Source of the DNA: Dimorphilus gyrociliatus | Lineage: Eukaryota; Animalia; Annelida | DNA: 64,000 bases | Assembly (NCBI GenBank): GCA_904063045.1 | Contig: CAJFCJ010000004.1 | Span: forward strand, 1,109,713 to 1,173,712 | Direction: 5' to 3' | Part shown: one piece after another, positions 1 through 44,520 of the stretch | Layout: each line of letters opens with the position of its first letter | How positions within the stretch are numbered: position 1 is the stretch's first letter | Made by a program: the position numbers and the translations under genes | Notes under the pieces: model-generated | Database searches by the model: none | What the model saw: only the letters and a program-made list of their open reading frames with translations | Told to the model about the DNA's origin: nothing

Positions 1-3000
1 TCTAAACGTCCCAAACTTAATCCATTTCCATTGACTCCTTTTATAATATTTGAAGATTGTTGTGTCCACCACCAGCCTCTTTCATCAGACAGATCACCTA
101 GACTATCCAGATCTTCATAGGATTCTCTGATAGATTGAAATATTATTGATCTATCAGTTTCATCAAAAACATAATTTTCCGATATATATAGATCATCTAT
201 TGCTAAAAAAGTTCCATCATACTGTCTTCCGACTACTAAACAATGATTTACATCACAGAAGGAAGGTCTACCATGAATTGACAAGGGATTTTGAGTAAGT
301 ACAAGTTGTGTGCCATTATACTTTACAACATCAATATTATTAATATAAAGAGACAACCCTTTTACTGAATGCCATGTGAACATAACATTAAGCCAATTAC
401 GTATTACAAATGTCTCGCTTGTTGTTCTCCAAACTGTGTCCTTAGTAACTACTTCTACAGTCAATTTATATTGATCGTAAACAACGTAATAGCCAACCTC
501 TGTTGTATTTGACATCAGCAATAGAGCATAATTTGTATTTGATGAAGGACGAAACCAGAATGATACAGATAGGCCCAGTTCACACTCCAAAATATTTGCA
601 AAGCATCTTGTTAAGTGATGCTTATTTGTGTACAATTGAAAACTATGATAATCTATGAGTTTTGCTGCTTTTCGCTCTCCATCGGCAAATGGGATTAGCT
701 TTGAAGTACTGTAAGAAGCTTTATATTGTCCATCAGAAGGAAATTTGCCGATATCTAGTTCGTCAAAACTAAACAAAATTCCAATTCTTTCATGTTCAAG
801 ACATTCGACACCGTCAATATTCCATTGAAAATTTCCACTACTAGTTGGTTCACTTATTAGAACCGTAGCAATTGGTAGAAACATTCCAGAATTATAAGTC
901 AAAAATCTCTCCCCTTCGTATGATATGTAGCCTTCATCAATACTTGAATCGCTAATACCATTGCAATTACAAGTTTCAGTATCATTACAACTATTGTCAT
1001 TTTTGCACGGACAAGTCATTGCAACATCAGCTCCAGGGAATGTTTTTGTTTTTACACTGAAAAGTCCTCCGAATTCCGTAACAGATCCACCTCCAAAAAG
1101 TTTATACTTATTTTCACACTTGAATGTAAACTTTTGACGGCATGAAGACGATCTACTCGATATGTTAGTAAGTATTTCCTGATCATAAGCCAAACTATCG
1201 GCCAAGGAAAATTCTTTACTCCCAGAAGTAAACCAAGTGCCTTCATCCTTCATAGGTATATGCTTATAAGTTGACTTTTTAGATGAATTTGTAAATTTAC
1301 AACGCATCATATAGGAATCTACTCTTAATGGATAATCGTCATCAAAATAAGCAGAATTCTCGTATTCCGAGCATGTTTTCATATCTAATTAAAAGAAATA
1401 AAATCTAACATTAGCTTTAAATAATATTATTTTTAATGTATTAATAAATTACCATAAAAATCGTATAATCCTATATCATCAATTATTCTATAGTGCTTCG
1501 TTGAAGTCATTAAATAGTATAAATCGTCAAATTCTCCTTTTCCTCTATTTGATATAGTAAATGGAGCTCCAGTCAATCTTCCTCCAACAACTATATATCC
1601 GTCAGTAGCTGAGCTTTCAATAAAATCTGAGGTTTTCCAACAAGTATAATTTAGCTCTGTATTATGTAAATAAAATCTAGCTCTTATAATGAGCCCTGCA
1701 TGATTTGAGACATTATATCGAAGTTGGATAAATTGCCAACTATGCATTTTTATTATTGTCCATGAAGCGCACGTTTTATTTTGACCATTAATTGTTATTG
1801 TCATATTATCATTCACGTTTGAAACTTCTATATGTGTTTGCTGCATATCACCAACCCAAAAATGGGTTCCTGCAGTTGACGATATTTTAAGCCAGAATGT
1901 CCATAAAAAATTCATCCCTAAACAATATCTTGGACTGGTCAGACAATTTTTAAAAAACTTTTGAGAGATTGCATAGCCAGTTTCATAATTAATGTGATTC
2001 CTAAAGTACAGTGATCCGAATTCTAAGCTGGCACCTTCTTCCAATTTAAAATAAACTCTAAGGTCTTTAGATAGACTTAATCCCCACTTTCCCCTGTCAC
2101 CAACTGTATAGCCATTTACAACAGATTCGAAACTAGATGTTCCTGAAGCAAATAGATTCTTCGTCTCTATTCCTTCATATAATTGAAGTGATAAAATTTT
2201 TTTATACTGATTAGAGATTATAAAATTGAATATCATAAATGTTTTAAAGCATTTGTTTTGATCGAAATCGCATCCTACATAATATTTAGGCATTTTATAA
2301 CGATTTTCAAGCAATCGACCTTTACATTCAGTTATTGTTCCAACTTCTTCAGAATTTATAAAAACGGTTAAGCCTGCAAAAGGTTTATACAAATAGTGAA
2401 GGTAAAACCATTGACTGTTTGGAAAATATCCTTCATATTCATATAAACATGTAAAAGTGGCGATTGAAATGACCAATTTTCCATTTCTAACAAAAATCGA
2501 TTGCCCATAATAATTGGGATGATTACCACCATTATCAAAGATATATCCTTCCTGAGAATCATTCGGTACTCCTGCTATGTACAGCCATAATTGAATAGTT
2601 ATTCCTGATATGCATTCCTCTATATCTTTCAGGCATTTATGCGGGGGTACATTTTCTTCTAAATAGTATCTCCCATCAAATATGTGTGCATTTGCTATAT
2701 CTTTTAGAATGGTAACCGCAGGTCCACTTGCTTTACTCTGTAGAGGCAATGGTTCGCTTATGTCACTTACATTAAAATACTTGGCACCCGGAAGGCCCAT
2801 TTGCCAACTTGATACAGTTTCTATAAATTACAGCTATTTTGTTCAAATGAACATTTTACATTAATCTAAGCTTACCTATTTTGTGTATAGCTTGATAAAT
2901 GTCCAATTTATAGGAAAGAAAGTAAAGTTCATCAATCCCAAGGGCTATCGAAGGCGAGTTACTTCCTGTTTATTATCAGAGATTTTTGATTATTATTAAA

Positions 3001-4893
3001 TGAAATGTGTAATAGGAATGATGTTTTTTACCAAGGATTAAGGGAGCTGAGAAATTGACTGAATACGGTGAAGGAAGATTTCCAATGGAACCTTCGGTGG
3101 CCAAAAATTCAAACTGATCACTTACAGAACTGTCACTCTCAGAAATTTTAATAGTTTTCTGTGTAAAAAGATAATAATCTGGAGTGTTTAGGTAATATCT
3201 TTTAAGTAAAATTTACTATAAATCCATTTATAATAGGGTCATAAATAAACAGTATATGATACCATTCATCTAAGAGTAATTTCGGACTCTGATATGTCAG
3301 AGTTCTGTGTTTCATATTTATTATCAGATTTAACAGAATAGTTGATTTCATTTGTTCCAAATATAAATAAAAGCCTGAAAAGACACTACATTTTAGATTA
3401 AATTAATAATACTATTGCTAAAATTGCCTTCATGCTGGATGCCTACATCCACATTTCCTATTACATACACTCTTTCTGAAGCATTAAATTCAACAAGCTT
3501 CAACCAGAAATCTAGTGTGAAACCATTGGGACACCAATGAGCTCCAGCAGCATTTTGATTTAAACATGTTGGATATGAACCCAAACTAAAAGAAGTGCCA
3601 TTTAATAATAAACCACCGTCTTTCCTTCCAGCAAATATTGACAATTTTTGTGGATTAGATAGTTTTATAGGTTTAGAGCCAGAAAATATGCTGTTTTCGT
3701 TTATTTCATCAAAATTGAAGAAAAATTTATCAGTATGGGTTTTAGAGAGTTCGTCTATAAAAGATTGGAGTATTTATTAATGTCTTTACGATTTTAATGC
3801 AAAAGATAAAATAGAAAGAACTCTTTATCGAAATTATAAGATACTCTGATGATTATAATGTTAATTTATTAATGTTTTTCGTATCTAACGGATCAGCAAA
3901 ACTAATCAATATACATTTCTTGAATAACGAAAAACTTTTTAAACCTTTTCTTTTCAATGAATGAATTGTAAAAGATGGAGCATCTATTATCTTTGAACAC
4001 AAATACACTGTGAAAAGCAATATTCCTCATTCATTTCTGATATTGAGCTGATCGGTTTAAACAAATAATCCGTAAGAAACCGTACAACAGGATAATATAA
4101 ATACACTTTCTTTTTTATAATAATGTCCTTGTTTGCTACTGCTTGTAGTTTTCATCAATAATAATATAGAGTTATACTATTTCATGAAACTAAACTAGAA
4201 AAGATATTATAAAACTAACTTACCGTAAATTTTCTCAACATTGTAGGTACTGTAAACCCGGTCACCTATTCTTAATTCATCAACAAGAATGGATCCACTA
4301 TCAAGATATTTTACGATTTTTAATGCTGAACCAGGGCTTGTAATGGTTTCATTCACGTAATTACTTGAAAAAGAAACAACTTCTTTATCAAGCCAAACAA
4401 TTATTCCTTGAGATTTTATATTATACGATACAGCAATATGGCACCAATTATGTAAGCATGATGATAACGTTGTCATTATTCCATAATATTTTCTTTCTCC
4501 TGTATTCAAGTGCACATATAAGGTACTGTTGCTTCCGTAATATCTCATTTCAATGCCTCTAGAATCTGACTCGATTGTAGATATTAATTCAACTGCTGCA
4601 GTGGAACTTGTTTGAATGTTCAGCCATACCGAAATAGATATACCATATTGACAATTAATGGGACTTTTTGGGCACTCTGTTGCCTCTGCCCAATTAGCCA
4701 CTATCACATCAGAAGAGGGGGTCACTTCAAGGCATTTTTCTTTAACTCCATTTAAATAAGATAAACCAGTTGTTGAAGCAATATATAAACTGTCGAATGC
4801 AGGATCATTATCAAGAGCCCAGAACCAAGATTTAGCACTGGTATATGATAATGAGGATAGGAAATATAGCAAAAACAACATGGCAAATTTCAT
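1..4893 (-). CDS. Polycystin-1-like gene copy A, 5' part only (signal peptide, LamG-like domains 1-5, start of domain 6, fibrinogen-like insert); continues beyond the left edge
   Basis: Hand-spliced, frame-consistent exons: 4893-4224, 3754-3428, 3374-3217, 3158-3032, 2965-2876, 2820-1453, 1384-<1. The last exon (MKTCSEYENSAYF...GLSLGRL) is open to base 1 but is absent from the ORF track. The N-terminus MKFAMLFLLYFLSSLSYTSAKSWFWALD parallels copies B and C, and the exons are colinear with theirs. The PKD/TM part is not visible, so the family call rests on paralogy. Confidence 0.85.
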
Positions 4894-5654
4894 CTTTTCC
4901 CACGGTTTTAAATTAAAACTAGAAAATCTTTCGAGAACAATCGGGCTTATAAATCATCAAGTATCTAATGAATTTTTAATCCGTTATTATCATAATTGAT
5001 GACGGATTTCTTAAGATCAATTCATCGGGCCTCAATCCTAGCAGCTTTCTGAGAGAAAGAAAAATAACTGAGAGGATATTAATTCATCTACTGCAAAATT
5101 TCCTGGACAAATATTCATTCAATAAAGTTACATTTTGCTATTCTTAAGTTACACCTAAAAATTTTAATTATTTCACTTAAAAACTTCTTATTTTCCTAAA
5201 AAATAGAAGTATCATTCAATTGGTTCAAGGAAAATGGAAATCTATAACTAAATATAATAATATATATAATAAATACTCTAGTTTCCAGCCTATAACTGAG
5301 GTAAGATATCGACCTACATATTATCAGATTAAATTAATTTCCCCCATTTACATATGAATAAATTTCGTTAAAAGTAGTATTTAATGCCATAAATTATAAT
5401 TTATTTAAATTGACACTCTGGGATTAATAAACATATTTCAAATTCATAATAACTAACATTTATCTTTTTTTCTTCGAAGAAAGCATTTAAAGAGAATGAA
5501 CTTCTGATATTATCAATATATAGAAGTTTTATGCTTTTTAACAAAGACTTGTAGTTATATATAATTTTCTGTTTTATATTCCGTATTGGTTCAATCAATT
5601 TTTAGATTAGCCCAATATTTGTATCAATGAATAAATAATGCTCCAAGAAAAAGA

Positions 5655-8600
5655 TTAATATATTGTTATTTTTCTTCCTTTTTTCTCATTGAATCCAAAA
5701 TATTCTTTAAAATCTAACAAACAACTTTGTATCTTCTTATCCAAATACTCTAAAACATAAAAATCACTTTTTATGTTAGATTTCTTTGCTCTGCCTCTTG
5801 CTTCATTCAGAATACTTATCAAGATATTCAGGCTTAAAACCGGTATGCATAAGACAAAAGTAACGAAAAACATGTGCCTGTAAGGAACTCTTGCTTTTTC
5901 CAAGTCTCTCATAAGTGGTGAGTTTAGAGACGATATGCAAAGAGTATACACTGATGACAACATCGTTGAAAATGATGACAAGTGTGTAACGTAAAGTAAG
6001 TAGCTCATATGAGCATGAGCTAAAAGGAAAAAGAGAAATACAAAGAATAAGGATTTAAGAGAACTTGATGCATTATTAATAGTTTTTATAAGCAATAGAA
6101 TAGTTTTATGATATTGTAGGACATACAACATTTTCAAGCATGATATTCCACTTACGAATGCCACGATGTAAGTATATGACTCATCTATGACTATAAGGTG
6201 CTGCATTTCCACAAACTTATCTTTAAGACCTATTTTCACTTTGTTGCGTAAAACAGTTTTAGCTAAAAACAGTCCAATGGTACATAGAGACAAAATCACA
6301 TTTATGAATGAAACTTTGTTCCATAAACTCTTGAAATATGCAAGTCGTTCTTTCCGCATATGTTTAACTACTTTGTAGAATTCGTAGAAAACGAAAAATA
6401 TAAATAAGATCTGACAAACCAAAACAGTAATTCCGTAGTTTGAATGATACGGATATAAATCTATCACTGCAATTCGATTCCATTTCGTAATTGCAACGTC
6501 CATTCCCTGTTCAACAACAATTGTTAAACTGATAAACAAATTGGAATCAGCGTTATATAGAGTTGATTCTATTATAATAGCTCTCGTTTTGGCATCTAAC
6601 CAGTCTTTAGGCGGTAGAATCGGTGTTGAATGTTCAAATATATAGCCCCCAGTCGGATATATATGTCGTTGTGCAACAATAGGATAAGATAACGGATTCT
6701 GGTAGGACCATTCGTTTTTAACAGTATCAGGGCTGTGACTTGAGAATGATTTGTTATAATTTTTCTTATCGATATTATTGGAGGAAAGATCATAGGAACA
6801 GTCTTTAATAACATCTTGTAGTTGTTTACAAGACTGTGAGACAACTCTAATTTGTCGCCAACGAATTGAACCAACTCTAATCCAACTTTGTTCGAATGCT
6901 CTAATCTTTTGTTCCTTCCAATGAAGTTTTTCGCCATTGTAATATTCCGTATCAAACATTGATGGGTTAAAATAAGTTGCTGTCCAGTTGTATAAGTCAT
7001 GTAATTCAGTAACTTTATCAAGATGATTTATAAAGCCATTTCGAATAGTTTGAGCAGCATGATAGCTCTTCAAGGGAACTTGTTTATAACCAATTACCAA
7101 TACTAATATGATATAAATACATGTTGTTACAATTCTTAATAACACTTTTTCTGTTTTAGAATTTTTAACGTTTTCCAGATGACTTTTAACCATATCATTG
7201 AGATTAGGTTTTGGAATATTTTCAATTGAACTCTCCACTAAAAGATTAACATTTTTTAATTATAAAGTAATTTACATAAAATAATAATAATAAACATAAA
7301 ATATACCTCTTATTCGCAGAAAATACTGGCAAATCTTTGTTGCTTTATTCACTGTTTCGACATGTTGTAAAAACTCTTCATCATCAAGATCAAAGTCAGA
7401 TTTTTTGAATAAGATCGATAGAATAAGAGCTATCACAATGACCTAAATGTGTATTATTTTAGTAGATATTACTATACCTATACTTTTTGTAATTGATTAA
7501 TTACAAACCTTAAAAGGTTGGATAACTATTACTGATTGAGTGAAGCTGATAAGCATGGATGTGAGCCATTGCTCTGATTTTGTTTTACCCCATTCTAAAG
7601 AATATAAAAGTACAAAAAAGAAGGAAAGAAATACTGTTATTGCCACTAATATCCATGAAACATAGATAAATATGGGTGGTAATGAAAATGACTTCAGCTT
7701 AATCATATAATCTCTCCTGGTCTTTTTAAACAAAGTCATAACTAAAAAGTTTATTGGAACGACCACAAGTGCCGATATTGTACCAATCCACAATTGTTGT
7801 ACGGAAAATATTAATGGTCCTAGCTTATATGTCAGATCACTTTCGGCATTTCCTGCTTGATAGAACATTGCTGAAGCAATCATGGATGCTGCAATCATAC
7901 ATAAGCAGCATCCAGCTCTTTGCACTCGAGTGAAATGGCTTCGAGTAGGTCTGGACACTACACTTAACCATAAGTGATCGTCAGTAAACTTATTCCTTAA
8001 CCACATTGGCCATAATCTTTTAAAAGAAGTAATATCTTTATTTTCCGATACGTTAACGTGAGCAGAAGGAGAGAGTTTTGATAGCAACGAATGGGCATAG
8101 AAGTAATATTTTTTCATTGTAGAGACATCTACTAAGATAATTTCTTCTAAAAACCAAGACGGTGATTTAGTTTTAATTGTCGGATTTATCCAAATTCGAA
8201 GGTTCTTTGGTTCTCCCAAACTCTTTTGCGTCGTCATATGATAATGAGATATACTCGATCTCTTTAGCTCATCTCGATATCCATCATATAAAGTTCGTAT
8301 ATTTGACGACGACTCTTCTCCTTCAATCATGAATTTTATCTGACTATCCGTTCCTGCATTTCGGCCATATCCCGTTCTAACAATTAGAGCGTAATGGTGA
8401 CGATCTAGTGCAGAATTATCCAAAAGACTTCTCATTTTCCACATTTCTTCATCTTTTTTATCAGCTCTTCTCAAAATTAGTAGAGAACACCAGAAGAGTA
8501 CCAGCATACAAATAATCAAAACCAAGACGGCTATATTGTCGCCAATTCGTTTCAATTTTCCGAATGCCGAACTAAAATCTATAGGATTCGGAGCGACGAG

Positions 8601-11600
8601 AACATTCGATCCGAAGAAAGTGAGATGGTTGCATTGGCAAGTGATGACATCCTTCTTTTGAACATCGGCCACCTATCGAGACGATGATTTCATTTAATTA
8701 GATTACTCGACTGTCCCTGAAGAGAACACTAAATAAAGAACTTACAGAGCAGTTATCCTTTTGCCATAAATTTTCACTTTCAGCCCAAAACAGACAGGAA
8801 ATTTTCTCCATAAATACTGAATAGTGAATTAAATCCGACTCTGCAAATGGTTGAATGAATCAATTCATTACAAATTCATCGTTGGGAGTTGTCAATCAAC
8901 AATAAATGTGTGACTTACCGAGTTTCATTCCAATGTATACAGTTCCATTTTGAGAAACTGGAATGATTCGTTCAAAATAATTTACTGCCGATGCAGTAGA
9001 GTATACAAGATATTGTTCATTCTCAGTTGGATTCTCATTCAAACGAACGTAAATTCGAAATTTTTCTCTTTTTTTCATCTTTAATTTCATAAATATGGCA
9101 GAAGTAGGCCAATCGTATGTTATATTGTGAATGATCATGGAAGATTTCCTCTCGGATAGATCGGGAATGAAAACATTTAGATATTGAGTTTTACGATTGT
9201 CCATTTTGAGTTCAAGTTTAATATCTTCTTTAAGATTACTGATATGAATCGGTCGGAAAAAGTTATCAAAAAGCTTAACAGAGAGGGTATGAGAGTTAAT
9301 AAGATTTTTCGATTGAGTTCCCCAGATTATGGGATTGAATTTAGATGATACTGACTTTTAAAGAAAAATTAATAGTTTAATATTTTGTTTGTCTCATTCA
9401 TGTATTTACCTGTATAGCTATTTCTTTTCCTTGATATGATTTTAATAGTTCGGAAGAAAGGGATGGAAAAGATATTGTGTTCTTTTTTTTATTATATTCA
9501 TATTTATTGTTGAATATGCTAGTTTTTTCTAGTTTTTGCACTTTGAGCAGCCAATTTTCATCACCCAACGTTACAGGCTCCTCACCTGTTACTTGAAATT
9601 GCATCAATTTTCTTGTTATAGAATCACTGATTGATTCAGCTCTCGTTATAACTTCTTTAGCCTAATCAATATCGAATGATGTGAATAATCAGAAACTATG
9701 TACTTTTAATGTATACATACTAAAGACTTGTCAATTTTATCAATATCCTCTTGCGATTTGGTAATATTTTCAAGATATTCCTCCCTCTGTTCCGGGGGTA
9801 AATCAGGAATTTTTAATGTTGGAGGAGTCGAAGGTTGACTTTTTGCTATAATACTTGTTAAAGTCTTCATTATTGCTAAGGAATAGGGAAGAATATTTTT
9901 AGTTAATTAAACTCTTGTTTATCTATTTCAGTACCTGTTGATGTACTGAAAACAGCATCAGGCGATTCGGTCAAAAGAAAGAATTTACTGGCTATATTCT
10001 GTAATATTTTGATTCCTTCCACCTATTATAAAGTATTTTTAGTTATTTTCAATATTAAGACATAAAAGGTAAGTTTAGTTTACTTTTGTTTCAAACAAGT
10101 AATAGATATCCTTTGATTCAAAAATAGCTGCCAAGGTAAACGAGGCTTGCTGAATGTCTAATTCGGTTGTAAGTAAAGGATTTATTTTTGAGAAGATTTT
10201 AACTAATTCATGTCGAATTTGTCGCTGTTCTTCCACAGTAAATTCTGTGGAAGAAGAGCAAGAGAATTTGGCGTTTAGAAGGGAGGCAACCGATGTTTCT
10301 AGTCTCAAAGCTCCATTATGATTGTTAGATTGTAATAGTCTATTCATTTCTCCATTTGGATTTAGAAGACTATTTAGAATTTCCTTCGCTCCAGCTGTGT
10401 AAGGTTGAACATGAGCTGTTAAAAACACAGTTTCTTTTGCCCCAATCATATCGATTATTTCAACTTTAATTTTTAAATTAGGATTGACTGGTAAATGCAT
10501 GGCTGGTGTTTTCGAATTAACGGACGAATGTAATAGGTTCCATTCTGAATTTGTCTCATAATAGATGCTAAAAGTCATTGGTCGATAAAAGTATAGATCT
10601 TCGGACGGGCTTCTTTTCAAATTCAAATCTTCATCGGACCAATCAGAGCAAATAATTTGAAATTTTGTCAATAAAGAAATACCTATAAAATACAGAAGAA
10701 ATGAATTACTTATAGTATAAATAGTCTTATAAGCAGTATTTACCTTGGTTAGGTTCAATAACGCATTTTCCGTTATATGGAGGATAATTAACAATAAATT
10801 TCTTCTCTATAAAACCAACGATATTTCCAGATCTCCATACAGATTTAAATAAATATTCTTTACCAGATTCGAAAAAATGTTCTTTAAATGCCAAATGTTC
10901 TAGTTTATGACCTATAGAAAATTAACATATCTATAAACTAATTACAGACAAAGCTTTAAATAGATCTTACTTGTTGTTATATTCTGACTGATGTCAATTT
11001 CCTTAGAATTACTATCATAAACAGTCCACGTTTTATCCCAAATTAAATTATCCTGACAATTGGCACATTTTGCTAATAGAGTGAATTTCTGCGATGGATT
11101 TATTTTTTTATTACAATTTATTAAACAAACAATATCCAACTCAGGTACAATGCCAGAATTGTCAATAGTATAAAGCTGTTGTAATTTAGTGATGATTGAG
11201 TCTCCTTGAACAGCTTCAACTTTTACAGAGAATGACCCTGTTTCAGTTACTTTCATTTCATAGCATCCAAAACCACAAGTAGAACGTTTTCTTCTTATTG
11301 GATTTTTATGTCGAAATAGAATTTTCCATTCGGTACTTTTTGAACCTTTCGTACTAAATATAAATTCATCAATTTGACCTCCATCTTCATCTTCAGAGTT
11401 CGAAGCATCTATTTTTAGTTTCTCATTAAATTTTACAGATCTAGCATTTCCTCCTTTAATATTTAACTCTAATGGAGTTTTTAGAATCTCAATGTATCTC
11501 AGTTCGGTAATAGTCATCTGATATTCGATAATGGTAGCGGTAAAATTTACTGTATGTAAACCATAATCTAATGCTCTTTTAGGAATACTAAACCAAGGCT

Positions 11601-26600: not shown

Positions 26601-29600
26601 GCATTTACAGACAACTGAATTTGTTATATATTCTTTAGCAACCTAAAAAATAATCGATATTAATAATCAAATTTTATGGATTTATGAATTTTTACAGAGC
26701 AATTATCGTACTGCCACATTTCATTGAGTTCATGATAATAGAGACAAGATAATTTTTCTATGGTAATAGAGTAATCCGCTTTTGATTGTTCTGTAAAGTA
26801 TTAGTTGGAATTTAATAAGTATAGTATAAATAATCATTTGAAACATTTGCATCAAAGAAATAAGCTTTCCTTTACCTAATTTCAATCCAATATAGGCCGT
26901 TCCATTATTACCTGTAACAGGTATTATTCTTTCAACGTAATTCGTCTTAGAAGAAATAGGATAGGATGAAGAAAACTTATTTCCTTTAGGCTCTTCATTT
27001 ATATTTGAGTAGATTTTTAATTTTTGCCTCTCTTTCAATTTTATCTTTAGTAGTATGGCTTGAGTTGGCCAATCGAAAGTTATATTATGAATAATAATTG
27101 AAGATTTCCTTAGATTTAAATCATCAATTTCAACTTTTAAGGGCTTAACCTTTTGTTTCTCGTAGTTTAGCTCAATTGTAATATTTTCGGTCAGATCTTT
27201 GACAATGATTTCTCTGTCATATTTATCAAATAATTTAATCGATAAAGTATGAGAATTGATCAAATCCTTTGGCTGACTTCCCCAGATAATGCTGTTTTTA
27301 TCGCTTGCTATAGTCTGAAAATTGATGAAATGTATATTGTCTATCATAGCAAATACAAGTGAAGAGTGACTAACTTGCAAATTAATTGAATTATCATCAT
27401 ATCCCTTTAACAAACCAGAAGAAATTGAAGGAAATACTACTCTATTCTTATCATTCCCACTTTGGAACGGTAATGTAAAAAGACTTGATCTTTTAAGCTT
27501 TTGAATTTTTAGCTTCCAATTCCTATCTCCCATAACTATTGGACTTTCATCAGCTACATGATGCTTCAACAGTTTCCAAGTTATAACATCACTGACTCTC
27601 TGAGCAGTGGTTACTACCTTATTTGCCTTTATAGGAAAAAAAATATTAATATTCATTTAAAGACCGACAATAGACAAACTGTTAGTTTTTCTCTTTTATC
27701 AATCATTTCCTGCTTCTTTGTGATATTTTCCAAGTACTGTTGTTGTTCTGCAGGAGGAAGATCTGGCATTGCTCTTGATAATAGAGGAGTGGGCAAACTC
27801 ATATTTATAGAATTCGACAAACTATTCATTAGACCTTGAAAATATTAATTAAATTATATAGATTAATGATTTAGAGATGTTTATTCTCTTTTTAATACCC
27901 TTGGACATGGAATAGGACAAATGTGGATATAAATTCTTAAACTGGTACACCTTATTCGCCAAAGTGTACAGGTTTGCAGCGCCTTCTCTCTGTAAGTAAA
28001 TTGCCGCTTAAATGAAGATGCTATATTAGCAATAAAAATATACTTTAGCATCTTCCGAATAGAATTTGCGATCTGCTGCCAAAATATTAGATAGAGTATT
28101 AATTCCTTGCAGTAAATCAGCTTCATTTTCCAAGAAAGGATTAATACTTGAAAAAGTGTTAATTAACTCTGATAGTAAGTCTTGATTTTCTTCATCAGTC
28201 AATTTTTTTGATGCCGAACATGACGGATTACTATTTAAATGAGCTGATATCGCTGATTCTAATCTCAAAGCTCCTCTATAGTTTTGATTGTCCATTAGTT
28301 TTTTCATTTCACCATTAGGATCTTTAAGAATGTGCATAATATCATCCAAGCCAGCCGTAAAAGGTTGTACATGAGCTGTTAAATATACAATTTCCACTTC
28401 GCCAATGAAGTCACTGATCTCAACTTTAATCGATAGATTTGGATTGAAAGGCAGGAACATTAAAGGTGATTGTGAACTAGTTGAAGAGTGCAATAAATTC
28501 CAGTCGTTTTTATTCTTATAATAAAAATTGTATTCGAGAGGACGAGTAAAGTAGATGTCATCGGACGAACTCCTCTTTAGCTGCAGATCCTCATCAGACC
28601 ACTCGGCGCAAGATATTTGAAATCGGGTAACGAGCGATACTCCTGATAATTAATTGTAAATTTGTTTAATTAAAAATAAATGGATTGAACTATTACCTTG
28701 AACAGGCTCTATTTGACAATTTCCATTATATGGAGGATAATTGGTCGTTATAAGCTTTTCTGAGAAACCGTAAGAATTTGAAGACTGCCATATAGCTCTT
28801 ATCCTGTAAGTATTACCTGGCTGTAATACTCCCCTTTCAATAGAGAAGAACTCTTTATTGGAACCTTTATTAAGGAAAGATGAAATACGATAAGATATCG
28901 AGTAATATTAATAATAATAATAAAGTAATTATTATATAATAAATTATACCTGACTTTATATACTTATCAACGTTGACAGCTTGAACACTATTTTCTAACA
29001 GCATATCAATTGACCATGAATAAGTCCAGACGGTAGTTTTAGGGCAATTTTCGCATTCACCTATCAAAGTAAATTTCTTTGATGGATTAACCTTTCGTCC
29101 ACAATTAAGCACACATTTAATATTTATGTTGGGATGAAAAAACGTAGAATTGGTGACTATTAATTTTTGAATGCTCGAAGCAATTTTGTTCCCCTGCCTT
29201 GCTTCAACTTTTACAAAATGTTGCCCTGCAGCTGGCGTCTTAATTATAAGGCAACCGAAACCACAGACCTCCCGTCTAGCTCGTTCCGCATTTTTCTGCC
29301 TAAGAATAACCGTCCACCTTGAAGATGCATGTTTTTTTATACTAAATATAAATTCATCAATGAATTTCCCATCTTCATCCAATGTATCCGACGCGTCAAT
29401 AATAATATCGTCATTTGAACGGGCTGATCGAGTTGAACCACCTTTTATATTTACTTCCAAAGGGGTACGCAATATCTTTAAATATCTTAGTTCTGTTGCC
29501 TTTAAGTTGAATTCTCTGATAAAAACTGTAAAGTTTAAAGTGTACGATCCATAAGCTAATAAGTTTGAAGGCAATCTAAACCAAAGTTTGTTATTCTGAG

Positions 29601-32600
29601 CTATATTAACAGGAAATCGTCTTTCATCCGTTATAGACCATATAAAATTAACAGGCCGGGAAGTCACACATTTATTTTCATAATCCGCTTGAAACAGTCT
29701 GGCCTCTGAGCGATAAATTAGTATGGGACTTTTCTCAGATTCTCCAAGTGATCCCAAATCAATAGTTGGTTTATTGCACTTTAAAACATCCACTTTCAAG
29801 CGAACTATTTCTTTCGAATTGGAGTTAAACACATAAACAGAAACCATAAAAGTTCCCGCTTTTTGCCAAACGTGATGATGTTGTAATTTCCTTCTGTCTA
29901 TTTGGAAATTCTTTAGAATGATATCTTTATAACCCTTCTTACATGACTTTTCTCCGTATAGATACCGCTTACTCGAATCACCAAAATCCCATAACAAACA
30001 AGGATATAAACCTAAGGAAATATAACCAAATTCCAATTTTGAGCTCTTACCAACAAAGGCGCTACTGATTAGATGGAGCGACAAACCCGCTATTCTATGA
30101 TCCACCGTTACCAAGAGCCATTTTCGTACACTGCAGAAGGAATTTATACCAATAACAGAAACATTATAGACGCCTTGGTTTTCATATATATATGACATTT
30201 GAAATTCCTTATCCCTTGCTTTCATTGCTTTTTCCATCGAAGTAGACATATTAAAGAGGAGAGTAACATTTGAACCTTTTTTCCAGATAGTATTAAAAAA
30301 TATTCTTTGTCCGGGAGAAAATATACTACCATTTATATAAAATTCAAAATCTTCAATACACTCTCCTACTCTTATCCTTGAAGATTGATTTTGAGAACTT
30401 ACTAAATTCCTAACTTCTCCCTTAATGTCATAGTATCCTTCCTTTTTGTATTTGTGAGTTATAGTGAAATTTTTCAAAGGATTAAGACCGACATTTTCAA
30501 AAATATCCTTTTTACCATCACCTGTTTCAAATATTAGTGTTGCTTCTTCAAATGTTTCGTTCCTATCTTCCAAATAGAATACGAATTTTGCATATTCTTT
30601 GTGCGACGCTACATTTTCTGTCTTCAACAAAACTTTTGGCAATTTTCTCACAAACTTTACTCTTTTCCATATTTGTTTTGTGCTATAATCATTTTGAACT
30701 GTCATTGTAATGTTTCGATAACCTTCTTTTGTAAAATTATAAGTCAAGGAGACAGTTTTTACTGTTGGATTATCTCCTTGAATAGAGAATGATCGTAATA
30801 AACCTTCAACATCTGACTTAATATCAATTTTATAATTTGAACCCTCACTAATCAGTGCTGTTATATTAAATTCTTTTCCGGTTTCCCAAACAATTTCGTT
30901 TGTAGTGATGTATAAATCCCCAATTTCTCTAACAACTTGAACTTCAGCAACAGCTGTCTTGAGAGATATTCGATTCTCAGCTGTCAGATTGTAAAAATAA
31001 GTATCAATAGTTAATGGCATAGGAATTTTGGTCTGATTAGAAATTTTAGGACAAGTTAGTGCTTTTGAATAAACTCTTCTATCGGACTCATTTATTTTTT
31101 TTGCTGTCATTGAACAAGTTATAGGAACTCCATTGATAATCCTCCAGCTCATTAAAACATATGGATCTTTGATTCGTACCAAATACTTTTCAGGTGAGAA
31201 TACAATTTCTTGTATTGGTTCTTCAACTTCGATGTTTGTTATTTGACACGTTTTTGATGAAAAGAAATTTTGGGCTAAAATGTCAATTTGAAATTTTCCG
31301 GTTTTGGTATAGTTATAAAGAAAACTTTGCGTTTGATTGGATATAACATTCTGTAACACTTTCTCTCTTCCATCACCAAAAGAGATATTTAAGCTAACAT
31401 TTGTTCCATGATGTACTGTATATTCTAGTGTATAGATTTTTTTATTTGACAATAGAAGCTCACTTGTACTACACAATAGGGAAGATATTGATATTCCCAC
31501 TTTAACTTGTATTTCTCTTTGTATTTCACTCACAGGATTACTCGCCTTAGCAATTAGCGTATAGAAGCCATCATGTTTATATAGATAGTATAGCTGCCGT
31601 TGATATTTATTTACATATGCTAATGAACTACTTTGATTCCCATCACCAAAATAGATTGTAAAATTTGAATGACTTGGAACGGCTACCGTTTCTAAGAATT
31701 TAATAAGCAAATTTAAAGGTTTTATTGTTGTTGAAATATCCAGAATTTCAAGATTCAAGTCAACAATAGGCTGGTAAACTTGAAAAGAAATTGTCGATGT
31801 CAAATTGCTAAGAGTATTGAAGCATGTTACAGATGTAGTATAAATTCCTTCGAATTCTCCAAGGATACCAAAATTATAGATATAATCTTTACCATTTGAG
31901 ACAAAAAATTGATTGGGAATCACAATCGAGCCATTAGTTTCAATACTAAAGTTGACATTTGTTCCTTTGTAAAGGCTTATTTGAACAGTAGTAGTTTCGT
32001 TGCTTTTAAGAATAGTTTTAGAAATGGATAGATTGAAATTCTTAATCTCTTCTTCAATTGTTACAGTTTTTGTATAATACGTCGCGTTGCTCACTTTGTT
32101 GGTTAACCAGAGTTCTAAATTATGATTTCCAATAGTTAAATTAGTTATATTCGCACAGTAATAGGTATTATTTATTTTAGTAGGCAGATACTGAATGCTC
32201 TCCAAGAGAAATTTTGTTACTACTGAAGTTCCTGATGATAACATCCAACAAAAGAGTTTAATGCTATCTAAGTTGTAATAAGATGCTCCTAACGCTCTAA
32301 ATCCTTTCAATTCTTCCTGAACCTCAACAGTTTGATTCAATACTTTTGAAACAGATCCAAATTCATTTGATGATTTAACAGTTATGTTAAAAATCCCTAT
32401 GGCATCTAGCTTTATAGTGAATTCGTGTATTTGACTACTGTTTACTAGAGATTCAATATAGATTTTTCGTGTATACAGCCCTAGAGAGACTTCTGTGTTC
32501 ATATTACTTCCTTCTTCGATCATTATTTCAATAGTTATTTCTTCTCCAGTTTTGAAAAACACCTTACGAGGACGAATAATTGTGATATTTCTTATTTCTG

Positions 32601-35600
32601 TTCCAACTTTAGCGAATGTACTATTTTCCTTGACAATAGATACATTGTTACTCAATTCTGCTACAACTTTATAAAATCCATCTGATGTTATTGTTGGACA
32701 ATTATTTTCTAGTTTTTCAAAATTTTTCACGAAATAATCTCCACAATCCAATAGTTTTGAAGAGTTAATTTCTTGAATTTTGACAGAAATCATAACGTTC
32801 GATGCCAAATTACTTGAAGCTATTCTGAAATTTACTCCTCCCTGATAATAACTTGAATTCTGAATGCTTACGGTTATCATTTGAATTGGATTTTCAATTT
32901 CTACATAATTACTGTATAATGATAAATTTCCAAGTATATTTGATGAATTTCCGTATAATCTATATACTCCGGGTTCATTATATTTCGTTTCATAGATTTC
33001 TGTATACTTTACATTATCCCCATTTAACTTCATAAAAGCATTTCCTTCACTAAAATGAATATTATATTCCAAATTTGACCCAGAAATTTTTAAAGTTGTA
33101 TTGAAAGTTTCATTTGTTTTATAACATAATTTTTCGAAAGAGACTGTAAAGTTGGATATTTGACGTTCTATTTGAACTGTCGTATTACCAGTCAATTCTG
33201 ATATGTTATTCTTTGCGATGATAGTAAGGTCATGTATTCCAATAGTTGTAAAGTTATCAGGAAGGATAAAGAAATAATCTCTGGTTTTTCCCAAAGATGT
33301 ATCGTTAAATACCTCAAAAGTAACATCATATCCATGATCAAGAGTCCAGAAAATTTTTTTCATGTTATCTCTTTCGAAGAGATAGTATTTAGATATGTTA
33401 AAACCGGATATGGGATCTTCAACTGTTACATTTCTCTCAGATGTATTGGAACTGATTAAGTTATGGCATTCAATTTTTAAAGTAGAAATTCCTTTTTTAT
33501 CGAAAAGCATAGAGTTTACGATAGGGTTAGTCAAATTGTCAGCAAATGTAAAGTTTTCTTTGAAGTTGTTGCGATAAAATGTGCAATTGGCCAAAGTTCC
33601 AGTAAATGCCTGGTATTTAATTATGGCTTCGGTACCAATTAATACGGAATTAGGTGCTTCCAATCTCAACCCAATTATATGCAAAATTGGCTTTGTGACA
33701 TGAACTTGTATGTTTACCGGAAAATTACTCTTTTCATTCACTGCTATAATTTCAATGTTAAATATACCAATTTCTTCAAATTTGTGTTCCAGAATTCTAT
33801 CTTCTGTGTAAAATTTGAATTCATTTCCGATGCTAACTCTAAACATTGGAAAAGTTTGGTTGTCAATGTGTAGAAACAGTTTAAAACTTTCATTAACATT
33901 AACAAGATTTATATCTAAGTTTTCCCTGGTGTAATGATCTGCAATAGTTACGTTAAATGCCAAAATCGGATCTGGATTTATGAAAGGCTTTACACCATCC
34001 AACCGATACATTGGATATTTATTAGTCTCATCGCAAGATTTCGCCGACAGATTTGCAGAGATAACACAATAACAATTAGTTATGTTTTCACCAGGTTTAA
34101 CTATGCTATAAAGATCCTCAATCCCACAGAATTGTCTACAAGACTTAAATTCAGATTCATTTCCAGCTAATGTCCAATTTTCGTTTATTTCTGACACACA
34201 TCCTTCTTTATACTGATCTGCGTAAAAAGGATTTATTACTATACTTTCTGAAAGACATTAGGTATTAAGCTAACTTAGATTAAAGTACGATTGTTGTGGT
34301 GTTATCAGTCCATCCCAAAAACTCAGTTCATCAATTTGAAAAGAAGATTTGCCACTTCCTATCGATATTACATTGTTCTGATCTGTTGTTTGGTTAGCGC
34401 TACTTCCAGATGATTCTCCTCTTAAGATATTGTCAACATAAACCTTCAAGCCTAATTTCCAACTCCACATGACATGAAAGTGGAACCATCTGTCTAGGTG
34501 AAAGTTTAGCATATGCTCCCAAAGTAGGTTTGAGAATTTCATCTAACATGAAAAAATAAAAGTTTGGTGAAGAAATTAAAAGAATGATATAGAACTACCT
34601 CAATTTTACAATATCTACGGAAAGGTAGACTTTCATTGAAAGAATCGCAATAGAAACTCAGCCAAGGCGAAGAAAAAATATTTTTAACTCCATTTTCGGG
34701 AAATTTAACATAAAGTGACAATGTAAAAGCCACACACTCTGTGAAATTCGTCAAACAACTTTCATTGATCATTCGAATATTAATATGACCATTTTTTAAC
34801 TCCGCTGCATGAGATGTAATATCTCCATTTACAAAAACAACATTGGAAGTTTGACTGTCTATGAGATCATTGTTAATTTTTCCTATGTCACCACTATTCT
34901 TGAAGCCCAGGGACAAGTGATTTCTATGAACAGTTCCGTTATCTAAAAATTTTAAGAGACAAAAATACTAGAATTCAAAGGAAGGAGTAAAATTGAAAAT
35001 CGAGAGGTGAACCTACTATAATCGGATTCAGCTGAAAAATTGGATGTACTTTCATCATGGAAATATAATTCATCAAATAGTAAACGGCTAGGACCGTCAT
35101 CACTAAGAACAATCTTCGATAACAAATATGTATTATCAACTGTAGCATACTTGACGAAGGAAACGTTTTGCTCGATACTATTAAGAAATATACTCAAGGT
35201 TTCATTGAAAGGATTCGAGTAAGTTAATGTGATAAGGTTCCAAAACAGTCTTCTAACCATTATTTGAAATTTATAAGTTATCTCTTTAGTAATAAAGGTA
35301 CCAATTAATGATTCGTTATGTGGTATATAAATTAGAGAGATCATTGTTTTAACATTTAGAACAATTATCATTGGATCGATTGATTGCGCTTCTATTTTCA
35401 ACCAAAAAGATAAAACTAATCCTTTATCACACCAGTTTGGACTTGACAAGCATTTTTTAGAAAAAGAATTATTAGTTTCTACGGAACCTACGATTTCAAT
35501 GGCGTCATTTTGAATCCCAGATCTTTTTGAAAATACCCCACTCCACTTTTCCTCTATACTGTCGTCAAAACTGAACATAAAATTTTCCATATTATATCTT

Positions 35601-38600
35601 GTTAAGTCACTTAATACAGTTTTATTAATAACAGATTTATGCAAATAAACCTCATCAATTTGAACTTTACTTCCTGAAAAGCTGAGTGTAGTGTTAGTTC
35701 CATGGCTTTCATAGCTCTTAAGCGTATAGGATGAGAGAAATTTTCCATTATAGTTTATATATAATGATTGATCATTCAAACTAAAGCTTATATGAGTCCA
35801 AATACCAATAGAGGAAGAAAAATATATTTCATCATTCAAGTAAGAACTTGTTAAAGACAAATTTCCAGGACTAACGAGCCTTAGCGTTAATACGTCTCCG
35901 ATGCTCAGTATATCAATTGGTTCATATTTTAAAGGTAACTTAAACCAAAAAGACAAACTAAAACCGCTCGGACACAATGACAGTTTTAAAGGACATTCAT
36001 TTGTAAAAGTGGTAGATAATTTTCCCAACTCTATGCCTTTTCCTTTCACTCCTTCAACTTCTGTACAATTTGATATATCCCAGAGCCGCCCTGTTTCATC
36101 GCTTAAGCTTCCTAAATCCTCCAGACTTTCATAAATTTCACTTAGGCCTTTCATATATATATATTTACGATCCTCTTCGCTATAAAGGTAATTTTCAGAA
36201 ATGTACAAATCATCTATAATCATAAATTGTCCAGTTAGCTGTTTCAAAAGACATACGCATGCTCTAATACTACAAGGCGAATTTCTTTGATATAGAACAG
36301 AACCAGTGACCGCTTGTAGAGAGACACCATCAAAATTTGATGCATGTATGTTATTAATATATAGATTAAGACCTAAAGTGGGATGCCAACTAAACATAGC
36401 ATTTAGCCAGTATTGTGTATTAAACTTAAAGCTTGTTACCCTCCATATTCTTTTTTCAAAACTTATTTCCACAATTATTCTGTTATTGTTATAAATGACA
36501 AAGTAGCTATTTTCAGTGTCATTTAACATTAATATCTCAGCAAATGTTGTAGTTTTTGATGGACGAAACCAGAATGATACTGAAACACCTAATGCACAAT
36601 CGGTAAGATTATTAAAACATCTTATCAATGAATTTGTTTGACTTGTTAATTCTAAACCAGTATCATCCATAAATTTAATTCCTTTTATGTGATTGTCTAT
36701 TAGTGGTACAGATTTCAATGGTTGGTAACTTGCTGCAAAATTTTTATCTATTGGAAAATTTGGAGGCGAATCACCCAACTCGTCAAATGAAAATAGAATA
36801 CCAGTTCTTAGATACTCTACACATTCTAGTGAGTCTAAATTCCAAGAGTAACTACCTGATGAAGATTCGCTTATTTTGATTGTTCTTATTGGTAGCACTT
36901 GAGAACCTGATAATCTATACTTGTACGATTCAACAGATAGCGTTCCCTCATCAAAAGTTGGAGTGTCCAATCCGTTACAGTTACAGATTTTAGAGTCTAG
37001 ACAAGATTTGTCATTGTAACATGGACATGTTTTTAATGTGTCGGCTCCAGGTAATTGATTAAAATAGACTCCATACATTGATCTAAAAGTAGTTCCTGTA
37101 TTCTCCCCAAATAAGGTGAACCCAGAGAAACATTTTATGGTAAAACGCTGACGAAATATAAGTGAAGTATCCGAAAACTTTTTCAGTGTAGTTATATAAT
37201 AATTATCGTACATAATACTATCTTCTTTTCTAAATTGATAGTTGCTAGAACTGTACCACGTATTCTCTCTCGTGAAAGGAAACCTCTTAAAAGTAGCTCT
37301 TTCAGGTGATCTTGAAAATTTACAGTATATCCATTTACCATCTACTCGAAGCAGTTCAAAATCCATAAAATACTTCGAATGTTCATACTCAGAACATGTT
37401 TTCATTTCTAAAATACAGTTTTGATTGATAATACTCCAATATGTATAACTAACTTACCATAAAATCCTTCATTGTGAACAACATCAATTTTCTTAAAATG
37501 CTTCTGTCCTATAAATCTATAATATAGATCATCAATTCCTCCACTTCCTGTATTTGTCACATTTCCTTCTTCCAGCTTTCCGCCAATCACAATAAATCCA
37601 TATAACGACGCATTCCATACTCTAGGTATCATATTACATTTAGGAAATAGTTCAAGGTTATTGATAAAGAACTGAGCTCTAAGTATAGTTTTTGCATTTG
37701 TAGACATGTTGTATCGTATTTCAAGAAATTGCCAAGTATCTAAAGTAATATTTTTGGAAAGTGAACACGTTTGTTCATTTGCATATAAAGATATCGTTAA
37801 ATTTTCAAAACTATTTTCAACTTCCAAGATAGTTTGATTTTCGCTTCCAACCCAGAAATGCGTTCCTGACGTTGATGTTATCTTTAACCAAAATGACCAT
37901 AAGAATAACATAGGCTCACAAAGTTCCGGACTTGTTAAACAATTCTTGAAAAAGGGGTGTGAAATGGCATAGTTTCTGGTGTAATTTAAATATTTTTTAA
38001 AATATAACGAGTCAAATTCCAGTTTAGCATTCCCCTGAACTTTAAACTGCACCTTCATAGATTTTTCAAATTGTGCAGATCTGATTCCCCTCTCACCCGT
38101 GAGATAATTACTTGAATCCAATTCATCAAATGTACAATGCCCTTGTCCAAAAAGTGTAGTTGAATTACTAACAATCTCACCAATTAAAAGTTTATCATCG
38201 AAGACATCAGTTATTTTTAAACCGTAGATCATAAAGTTTTGGTAGTTAGTACTGTCGTTGAAACGTTTACCAACAGCTATAGAAACTGCAGGTAAACGAT
38301 TTCGAAATACTCGACTTTTACATATTTTTGCTTCGCCCATCACTTCCGAATTGATTAATACTTTTAGACCACGTCTTCCGCTTTTATAGGTGTAATGCAA
38401 GTGAAACCATTGATTTGTTAACATTTCAAGTCTAACAACGTAAGAGCATATGGTAGTCGCAACAGAAACGATAAGTTTACCGTTTTTAACTAGCACAGAA
38501 TGGCCATATTCTCCATCGCTGTATCCTCCAAAATCTAAAATGTGCGCATCTTTTCCCGCAATAGCTGATCCTATAGATGAATTAAAAATATTATAAAAAT

Positions 38601-40874
38601 ATTCAGAGCTTTTAGGAAAGTATACCTGTTAAATACAGCCATAATTTAACATTTAGTCCTCCGTCGCACAACTCCAGGTCCTTAAAGCAAGGTGAAAGAG
38701 GATTATGAAGCTTTATAGGATCATAATTGAAGTAATAATCGCCATCAAACAACATTGGCGAAAGCAATTTGTAATTATTATAAGAAATTTTAAGCATATA
38801 TGGCCCGCATTCATGACATATTTTTGGAACGCTTGAAACGTCGCTAGATAATTTAATAAAGTTTGACGGTACAAGATAATGCGGTATGTCCATCGACCAT
38901 GTAACCAATAATTCTTTAGGAGAAAAATATTATTCTAACTAAATGGAACAATAAAGTTAAACATTACTTATTCGTGATCTCGCTTTCTTGACATCAATTT
39001 TTTTAGATTGAAAGAATAGCTCATCCACGCTGAATGCAACATCATTTGTTCGCGAACCTAAAGTAATTTATTTTTATCTAATTAATTGACCATAAATTAA
39101 CTACTAATTATTTTTCTCTACCTAATAATAATGGTTCGGTAAAATTCACTTCCCGTTTAGCAGACTGGTAAATGCTGGAGGTAGTTCCTAAAAAGTCAAG
39201 CACGTTTGAAGTATCCCAGTAAAGAATTCTTTTCTGAATAAAAAAATCAAATAAACAAGATGATATAACTATATTAGTATAAAATCTTTTGTATGTACTA
39301 TAAATCCAGAAATAATTGGGTCATAGATAAGCATAATATGATACCAATGATTTTCAATTATAGTTTGAGACGTATATCGCAATGTATCTGTTTCCTTATA
39401 TATATTGACCTCTATCCGATTGCTTATTAAATAAATAGCAAACCCTATAAAAGCGAATAAAAAACAATTAAAGATAATACGGAATTGACAAAATATAATT
39501 GTCTTTATATAATACCTTGATTTGAAGATGTTTTGTCCGCATTACCAATGAGCTTTGTGTATTGGTACCACTTAAACTTTTCAATTCTCAGCCAAAAGTC
39601 TAGCGTAAAACCAAATGGACACCAATAACCACTTTGAGTATTCTGAGTTAAACAATCAGGATATGTTCCTAAATCAATTTCAACTCCCTTCATTTTCAGA
39701 GCACCCCGTCTCCGTCCATCCGTTATAGCCACATTATCTGAAGAATTTAACTTTAGAATCGGTAGACCAGATAGAACACTTCCTTCGTTTATTTCATTAA
39801 AGTTCCAAAAGACTTTATCAGTAAAATTTTTGCTTAGATCATCTATAATTAAAGAAAGAAAGAAAATATAGTATATCAATTTGTTTGTTGTTAATCAATA
39901 GATATTAAGTTTCTTGTTAGTCTAACATATGTATAATCAATGAAGGTTAGTTAATTGATATAAATAATAAAATAGTTTACTAAATCATGTCATTTCTTTT
40001 TCATAACCTTCGCCAAGACATGGCGCTTATTTCTAAATCAAATGGCAATTGGTTGTCAATATAATTGATAATGTCAACTTTTTTTTTGTTTGGTCTATTA
40101 ATTTTATATAGAAAAGCTATATTTAAAAAAACCCCCAATAAATTGACAATACCTGATGAGAGTACTTTAAAAACTTTGGATTTAATAAAAAAACATTAGA
40201 AATCTGATAATAAAAGTCATACCATATAAGATATCGAGGTCATACTCAGTGTATACATCGTCCTGAATGTATACTTCGTCTATTAGCAATTTTCCTGATA
40301 TTATATCATTTCCAATTTTTAATGCAGAACCTCTTGTGGCTATACTGGCATTTGCATACAAACTGCCATTTGTTGCAATTTTATTATTAATCGCCAAAAA
40401 GTAATTCTCTGCACGTTTATTCCATACAAGAAGAACATGACACCAAGTACTTAGACATTCTGTTGTTACGCACTCATCATCATATGTTCTTTCTCCAGTA
40501 TTCACTAGAAATTCTAGTTTATTGTTTGGACTATTATAGAGTATTTGAAATCCTTTTGAATTTCCTTCAATCGTTGATAAAAGTTTTACTTTTGAACTCC
40601 CAACATTATAAAGTATCATCCAAAATGATACACTTAAACCTTTCTGGCATTCTGAAGGACTGATCGGACAATCATTCGAACTTGCCCAATTTGCAACTTC
40701 GACACTTGAAGAACTTCCTATTTCAATAGCTGCATTACGTTTCCCTCCAACAACATTAACATTGTGAAATGTTAGATTCAAACTGTTAAAATTCTCGTTA
40801 TTATCAAGTGCCAAATACCATGATTTTCCATCGGTTAGTGAAAAAGTGGATAAAAAAATTACTATGAAGAACAT
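23629..40874 (-). CDS. Polycystin-1-like (PKD1/REJ family) 11-TM receptor-channel subunit, copy C, ~5,225 aa, 21 exons
   Basis: Exons: 40874-40223, 39842-39516, 39444-39299, 39233-39122, 39057-38968, 38913-38626, 38570-37458, 37407-35017, 34942-34599, 34542-34275, 34217-28950, 28864-28697, 28642-28044, 27989-27899, 27834-27680, 27626-27375, 27314-26876, 26790-26696, 26642-25479, 25397-25262, 25208-23629. The total is 15,678 nt and in frame. Many exon lengths match copy B exactly (1113, 344, 268, 168, 599, 155, 252, 95, 1164, 136). GPS reads CKCNHLTSFG. Confidence 0.93.
24356..25070. repeat. Near-identical duplicated tract, copy 2 (partner 6385-7099); encodes the TOP domain of copy C
   Basis: Same comparison; constant offset of 17,971 bp. 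Confidence 0.97.
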
Positions 40875-42837: not shown

Positions 42838-42882
42838 GTGACGCATGCGTATAAAAAAATAACGATAACGCGCATGCGTCAC
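42838..42882 (+). promoter_or_regulatory. SET proximal promoter: 12-bp inverted repeat of NRF-1-like sites flanking a TATA-like box
   Basis: GTGACGCATGCG (42838-49) ... CGCATGCGTCAC (42871-82), with TATAAAA at 42850. An ETS-like CCGGAAG lies near 42692 and a YY1-like GCCATTTT near 42885. The SET ATG is at 42926. Confidence 0.55.
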
Positions 42883-42925
42883 GGCCATTTTTGTCAAAGG
42901 CAAGCCGCTAGTGAAGCTTATAATA

Positions 42926-44338: not shown

Positions 44339-44520
44339 GCTTGTAAAAACTTTTTATTTGTACATATAAAAGAGCTACGAAGAGCCAAACGTTCATAATA
44401 AACATCTAAAAAGGCGCATTTAAAAAAAAAATCAACTACTCTGTCTGTTTTTGGTTATTTGTAATATTTTAGTTATCATGTGTTTTGTTTCTCTCCATGT
44501 AAAATTCAAAAACAATAGTT

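Follow-up and report, generated by a model that had tools for sequence, protein, structure and literature searches.

A tandem gene array predicted to encode giant polycystin-1-like receptors with LamG ectodomains in the annelid Dimorphilus gyrociliatus

Polycystin-1 proteins are medically important, and their ligands are still unknown. A stretch of 64,000 nucleotides (nt) from the annelid Dimorphilus gyrociliatus (GenBank assembly GCA_904063045.1, contig CAJFCJ010000004.1, positions 1,109,713 to 1,173,712 of the forward strand; hereafter the window, in whose coordinates positions are given) carries a large unit repeated head to tail, in which LamG-like domains lie directly ahead of a polycystin-1-like body and the open reading frames (ORFs) appear as many separate pieces. 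This arrangement raises the question of whether each unit encodes one protein or two and, if one, whether it belongs to a known class of receptor. Here we show that the window holds three paralogues on the minus strand, and we propose, with a probability of about 0.82, that the locus is best explained as a tandem array in which each gene encodes a single, very large polycystin-1-family glycoprotein with a type I start, 11 transmembrane segments (TMs) and a LamG ectodomain. We read the LamG array and the polycystin body as one polypeptide because an orthologue keeps the phase-1 intron between them and the ORF of a more distant paralogue crosses the junction uninterrupted. The LamG array on a PKD1 core adds a new ectodomain variant to a known receptor family, within a lineage-specific expansion, and does not amount to a system of a new kind.

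Three paralogues on the minus strand

Between positions 1 and 40874, all ORFs of at least 150 amino acids (aa) lie on the minus strand. Three ATG-initiated first exons begin at 4893, 22964 and 40874, at spacings of 18,071 and 17,910 bases (a period of about 18 kb), and in-frame stops precede each ATG. All three N termini start with a hydrophobic, signal-peptide-like stretch that is followed by a conserved KSW(Y/F)xALD motif. The copies are fully collinear when the modelled proteins are searched against each of them with tblastn, and the spacers from a stop codon to the next ATG measure 664 and 761 nt. The three genes are:

1..4893, minus strand: gene A (partial), with the signal peptide and first LamG-type exons; it runs past the left edge of the window while still in the LamG part
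5655..22964, minus strand: gene B (complete), 21 predicted exons, 5,284 aa, stop codon at 5657-5655
23629..40874, minus strand: gene C (complete), 20 predicted exons, about 5,250 aa, stop codon at 23631-23629

Gene A is identified by its ATG-initiated ORF (4207..4893) and by collinear tblastn matches to B and C (35–42% identity) that continue down to base 3, with Pfam Laminin_G_3 found within 3-1388. To the right of 40874, neither strand holds a further copy or anything related, and 41000-64000 contains only short ORFs and no polycystin-related sequence; the array therefore ends at copy C on its right side.

Gene models were obtained by dynamic-programming exon chaining, with codon usage trained on the long ORFs, splice-site matrices learned iteratively and extra weight for frames matching the other copies or related loci. 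The first passes, run with a flat intron penalty, overlooked small exons and yielded proteins of 4,912–5,096 aa; they were replaced by passes guided by position weight matrices and homology. The final models of B and C contain no in-frame stop, and every intron is GT-AG, with a median length of 56–61 nt; predicted introns in B span 34–312 nt, and the models of C reach 5,250–5,254 aa. A preliminary description of this locus, made from the sequence alone, had proposed three head-to-tail paralogues with an 18-kb period and ATGs at 4893, 22964 and 40874, B and C being intact and about 5,220 aa long. The three-paralogue minus-strand array is confirmed by the ATG-started ORFs and the tblastn collinearity, and the stop-free models of 5,284 and 5,250 aa place the estimated length within about 1%.

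The G+C content is about 30% throughout the window and, together with introns of 40–85 nt, is consistent with a compact genome. Gene C has an extra 54-nt intron (38967..38914) inside a single exon of B, and the presence of short introns differs among the paralogues.

The LamG ectodomain and the polycystin body

Taken from the N terminus to the C terminus, the main features of gene B are:

16286..22964, minus strand: exons 1-10, signal peptide and eight LamG-like units (N-terminal ~1,955 aa)
about 18638-19770 (aa ~900-1215), minus strand: Cys-rich insert of about 300 aa between LamG units 4 and 5, with the invariant pattern TCPC...C...CNCNG...DEG; counterparts at 36701-37405 in C and 699-1388 in A
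16003..16244, minus strand: 6-Cys module, C-x7-W-x11-C-R-x2-C...C-x-C...C, at the start of the big exon
10971..16002, minus strand: rest of exon 11 (an exon of 5,274 nt), about 13-15 PKD (Ig-like) repeats, then the N-terminal part of REJ
8707..10911, minus strand: exons 12-18, C-terminal part of REJ and a GAIN-like region, with Pfam REJ (5.5e-15) in 10078-10794
8619..8627, minus strand: GPS tripeptide H-L-T within C-x-C-N-H-L-T-F-F-G, about 30 aa before TM1; the equivalent in C is at 26597..26589
7509..8672, minus strand: exon 19, end of the GPS, TM1, PLAT domain (Pfam PLAT 1.9e-10) and TM2-TM5
5658..7237, minus strand: exon 21, TOP/polycystin domain and the last five of six channel-like TMs; TM6 lies upstream (exon 20 or early exon 21)

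The C-terminal body carries the features of the PKD1 family in order. Exon 11 matches Pfam PKD (1.1e-27) and REJ (2.8e-20), so that both PKD repeats and REJ are present; the repeats (about 13–15) were counted with a hidden Markov model (HMM) built from the proteins themselves, hereafter self-HMM, and the first of them after the 6-Cys module has a PKD fold (Z 10 to the PKD domain of SorCS2). Two loci from the Logan collection serve as comparisons, a 34-kb contig (L003) and a more distant paralogue found in three Logan runs (L005). REJ is found in both, and exons 12–18 of B are collinear with C and L003. Ahead of TM1, the GPS is recognized by its motif (CQCNHLTFFG in B and CKCNHLTSFG in C), with a weak Pfam GPS match (0.0045) and with cleavage as a prediction only. 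Hydropathy analysis gives eleven TM-like peaks at the C terminus with PLAT between the first and the second, placing this domain in the first intracellular loop, and a PDB sequence search with exon 19 returns the solved human polycystin-1 (6a70_B, E 4.5e-36). The last exon matches Pfam Polycystin_dom (1.9e-25) and PKD_channel (1.7e-26), as well as the solved structures of PKD2L1 (1.5e-31), PKD2 (about 1e-30) and PKD1L3 (7d7e_A, 9e-20), in agreement with a TOP domain and a six-TM polycystin channel-like module. Because of the PKD1-type five extra TMs and the PLAT domain, B is not a PKD2-type subunit.

The N-terminal region consists of eight LamG units in B (starting near aa 69, 320, 565, 796, 1216, 1425, 1608 and 1813), and C has the same number at corresponding positions; an HMM grown from the last LamG unit detects them with domain E-values of 1e-17 to 1e-33. 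Pfam Laminin_G_3 is detected in exons 1, 6 and 8 of B and more weakly in others, several exons scoring above the curated cut-off with up to 64.8 bits. The AlphaFold model of exon 8 (model confidence, pLDDT, 77) contains three jelly rolls with Z of 12–18 to ConA-like, pentraxin and LNS domains, and its top Foldseek match is neurexin-1 alpha LNS1-6. Both a family profile match and the jelly-roll beta-sandwich of the LamG/ConA-like lectin superfamily are thus found, the fold for three units. These results bear out two parts of the preliminary description: a LamG-like region of about 1,900 aa, now resolved into eight units by self-HMM, Pfam Laminin_G_3 and a ConA-like fold (Z up to 18), and a polycystin-1-like PKD-REJ-GAIN-PLAT-channel body, to which Pfam PKD, REJ, GPS, PLAT, Polycystin_dom and PKD_channel and the PDB matches correspond.

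Two Cys-rich elements are embedded in the ectodomain. The insert between LamG units 4 and 5 has no Pfam match at E<=5, nothing better than E 0.34 in a PDB profile search and a structure-model confidence of only 50–70; neither Pfam nor the PDB profile search gives sequence support for a Caspr/neurexin-IV-type fibrinogen-like domain at this position. In the 6-Cys module, the W, the six C, the R, the S and the Y are invariant in an alignment of four genes, and the structure model of L005 shows this module as a beta-beta-alpha-beta-beta unit (pLDDT 65–83).

The junction, divergence and alternative explanations

Whether the two regions belong to one gene turns on a pair of short introns:

16245..16285, minus strand: junction intron of B, 41 nt, phase 1, GT..AG, joining the last LamG domain to the 6-Cys module and the PKD-REJ body
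34218..34274, minus strand: junction intron of C, 57 nt, phase 1, GT..AG, yielding a stop-free 5,250-aa protein

The exon-chaining model picked the B intron (16285..16245) independently. In C, the junction produced by the 57-nt intron aligns with those of B, L003 and L005, and this intron was preferred over a 45-nt one because of the alignment to paralogues and orthologue and its better acceptor. The 45-nt alternative (34288..34244), which was the choice of the automatic model and is also in frame, aligns worse and was rejected. L003, whose layout is the same, has a 62-nt phase-1 intron (GTGAGT...TTTAG) at the homologous position. The junction of L005 is intron-free, a single ORF of 1,972 codons running through the last LamG domain, the 6-Cys module, the PKD repeats and REJ; the LamG identity at this junction rests on the alignment to B and C and on the self-HMM. 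By hydropathy, gene B has no hydrophobic segment in aa 18–4372, and the ectodomain of C shows two marginal peaks (1.64–1.66 at a threshold of 1.6). The short phase-1 junction introns that had been proposed at 16245-16285 (41 bp) and 34218-34274 (57 bp) are thus exact in their GT...AG ends and phase, and the proposal of one polypeptide per copy agrees with the same-phase intron of the orthologue and the intron-free junction of the distant paralogue.

L005 (3732-9650) lacks both of the short introns that B, C and L003 have in this region, namely the one that splits the last LamG domain (B 16554-16622, C 34543-34598) and the junction intron.

We take L003 to be the positional (syntenic) orthologue of C because its flank has 78% DNA identity to window 42670-46720 and the neighbouring NAP-domain gene has up to 97% protein identity. 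In a comparison of C with this orthologue, non-synonymous change (dN) is 0.37 in the ectodomain and 0.11 in the TM exon, and synonymous change is saturated (pS ~0.7); dN so far below saturated synonymous change indicates purifying selection, with a fast-moving ectodomain. The LamG array has about 52% identity between the orthologues. Between B and C, identity is 34–50% over most of the ectodomain and 77–88% over the membrane part. In the database, each copy has its own closest relative of the LamG exon, P0001 for B (44%), P0002 for C (52%) and P0003 for A (50%), which dates the triplication to before the split from the related species.

Certain patches depart from this pattern. Positions 14891-15483 of B and 32877-33471 of C are 83.7% identical in DNA and 92% in protein, compared with about 70% in protein to the orthologue, and in two further patches B and C resemble each other far more closely than either resembles the orthologue (12271-13315 versus 30259-31303, and 5674-8635 versus 23645-26605). 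The 3-kb block at the 3′ end of the two genes is 78% identical, introns included. Such patches of similarity point to patch-wise gene conversion within the tandem array.

The neighbour on the right is a multi-exon gene within 42670-46720 that includes a NAP-domain exon at 43754-44116 on the plus strand. The synonymous distance (dS) of this region to the L003 flank is about 0.6, far below that of the polycystin-like gene next door (pS about 0.7, saturated).

Database searches address how unusual this combination is. An exhaustive HMMER search with the LamG exon, run against 1.84 billion representatives, gave 38 matches, 4 of them strong (<1e-30), all ORF-sized pieces from Logan runs SRR233722xx; the search gave no long annotated protein joining this LamG exon type with PKD/REJ, and the long matches have other partners. 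When the PKD-REJ part was used in a word-indexed protein search, the Logan ORF P0039 was the sole match. Feature searches of the Atlas for a LamG-polycystin architecture produced only generic LamG clusters or bacterial LamG+PKD clusters, and no description of LamG/Laminin_G_3 combined with polycystin/REJ was found in the papers searched. With its 4 strong LamG-exon matches, the family looks lineage-restricted and expanded, as the preliminary description had held.

Three other explanations of the locus have to be weighed. Each repeat unit could contain two genes, a secreted multi-LamG protein of about 1,950 aa and a separate polycystin-1-like gene that starts from the big exon, the in-frame 'intron' of 41 or 57 nt being coincidental. 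The ORF track does display separate ORFs, but a gap of 41–57 nt is too small for a terminator and a promoter. The signal peptide occurs at the N terminus only, the upstream LamG part has no stop or anchor, and the downstream part has neither an initiator Met nor a signal peptide of its own. As the position and phase of the intron are also identical in B, C and the orthologue, and the reading frame of the distant paralogue is unbroken across the junction, we consider two genes per unit extremely unlikely. It is also very unlikely that the copies are decaying or silent duplicates in a dead tandem array, a reading for which the strong divergence of the ectodomains (34–50% identity between paralogues) might speak; against it stand two stop-free chains of more than 5,200 codons with canonical splice sites throughout, a dN far below saturated synonymous change relative to the orthologue, and the conservation of the GPS motif, the Cys patterns and the TM module alike.

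The remaining alternative accepts the layout as real but regards it as ordinary, LamG ahead of a PKD1 core being common in unannotated proteomes of spiralians or other invertebrates. The ectodomains of the PKD1 family are modular, with CTL, SUEL, EGF, LRR and WSC domains (PMC1934368), and the searches used here did not query by domain architecture. On the other side, among the matches of the HMMER search, which was exhaustive, no long annotated protein pairs this LamG exon type with PKD/REJ, and the papers searched contain no such combination. We regard an ordinary layout as fairly unlikely.

Several observations weigh against this preferred explanation and temper it. Exon boundaries, use of the junction introns and expression of the array genes are predictions, and several small exons in the models of B and C are uncertain, as are two very short introns of 34 nt (8706..8673 in B) and 38 nt (27664..27627 in C); the boundaries of such small exons are likewise predicted. 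In the structure model of the L005 junction, the LamG part has a pLDDT of about 26. The label 'WSC', which had first been given to the 6-Cys module, lacks sequence support: the isolated module has no Pfam match to WSC even at E<=10 and no PDB profile match, and it is called here a 6-Cys module at the place where PKD1 proteins carry WSC. The selectivity filter of TRPP (PKD2-type) channels is not conserved, the ILGDFDY of PKD2L1 aligning by phmmer to SLNSPLM in B (LGD to LNS). For this reason the protein may not conduct ions itself, and the B subunit may shape a pore, or take no part in one, unlike PKD2-type channels. Finally, PKD2 partnering, GPS cleavage and ligand binding are carried over from other members of the family.

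Proposed working and comparison with known systems

Beginning at the N terminus, the modelled proteins show the following order: signal peptide, eight LamG jelly rolls with the Cys-rich insert after the fourth, 6-Cys module, PKD repeats, REJ, GAIN-like region with GPS, TM1, PLAT, TM2-5, TOP domain and six-TM module. By analogy with the family, autoproteolysis between the L and the T of the GPS tripeptide would leave an extracellular fragment of about 4,340 aa tethered to the 11-TM stalk. The conserved membrane module, 77–88% identical between B and C, would assemble with PKD2-type subunits in the manner of PC1–PC2 (PC1 being polycystin-1) and PKD1L3–PKD2L1, whose solved complexes are 1:3; the preliminary description had likewise supposed that variable ectodomains plug into a shared PKD2 channel, in receptors of putative sensory or adhesion use. 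The fast-diverging LamG array, in turn, could let each copy bind a ligand of its own, a glycan or a protein, at the surface of a sensory cilium or a gamete, as family precedent suggests. The array, to whose copies A, B and C separate best matches exist on contigs of the related species, predates the split from that species, and gene conversion appears to be homogenizing patches within it.

A more speculative extension, which we consider improbable, is that the array serves in recognition and evolves fast, with gametes, mates or conspecific surfaces as its targets, like the sea-urchin REJ proteins or the s-Themis PKD1-like self-sterility receptors of Ciona. The LamG array of each copy would then read a different ligand, and conversion patches would shuffle the binding surfaces while the channel-coupling module stays constant.

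The locus adds one more class of 'antenna' to those that the PKD1 scaffold can carry, in a genome famous for compaction that nevertheless retains and multiplies 18-kb genes. Several divergent ectodomains, each a homogeneous array of the well-understood LamG binding fold, on one conserved membrane module provide a comparative handle on the coupling between ectodomain and channel. Knowledge of where the genes are expressed and what their products bind is needed before the practical yield can be more than modest.

The closest known architecture is that of human PC1, PKD1L2 and PKD1L3, which share with B and C a Cys module in the WSC position, PKD repeats, REJ, a GAIN/GPS with the HLT cleavage motif, TM1, PLAT, TM2-5, a TOP domain and a six-TM polycystin module. 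Human PC1 has 16 PKD repeats, and the 13–15 or so in B and C come close to this number. The N termini differ: B and C have about 1,950 aa with eight LamG-type domains and a Cys-rich insert, whereas PC1 has LRR, C-type lectin and LDL-A domains. The channel module of B and C is nearer to PKD2 and PKD2L1 than to PC1, and WSC is unrecognizable by sequence in B and C. The two annelid proteins are about 950 aa longer than PC1 (4,303 aa; PMC1934368). WSC ahead of the PKD repeats is found in hPKD1 and in some sea-urchin REJ proteins (SpREJ) but is not universal. Planarian pkd1L genes are markers of ciliated sensory neurons and of reproductive organs, and they show co-expression with pkd2 genes (10.1101/2024.07.17.603829).

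Neurexin, Caspr and laminin LG arrays resemble B and C in that tandem LamG (LNS) jelly rolls form an elongated ectodomain, which binds ligands in the known systems. Proteins of the neurexin/Caspr type, however, are single-pass adhesion proteins with EGF spacers, whereas B and C lack such spacers and continue into an 11-TM polycystin body; their domains match Laminin_G_3 rather than Laminin_G_1/2.

The sea-urchin REJ proteins offer a further parallel: this PKD1 subfamily is likewise specific to its lineage and present in several copies, and its lectin-type N-terminal modules vary on a REJ-GPS-PLAT-TM core (PMC1934368). The modules surveyed there are CTL, SUEL, EGF, WSC and PKD, and the word 'laminin' is absent from the paper (PMC1934368). 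Some members have channel domains, the binding domains evolve fast and a role in sperm has been shown (PMC1934368). The ectodomains of SpREJ proteins are built from C-type lectin, SUEL and EGF modules, and those of B and C from a LamG array.

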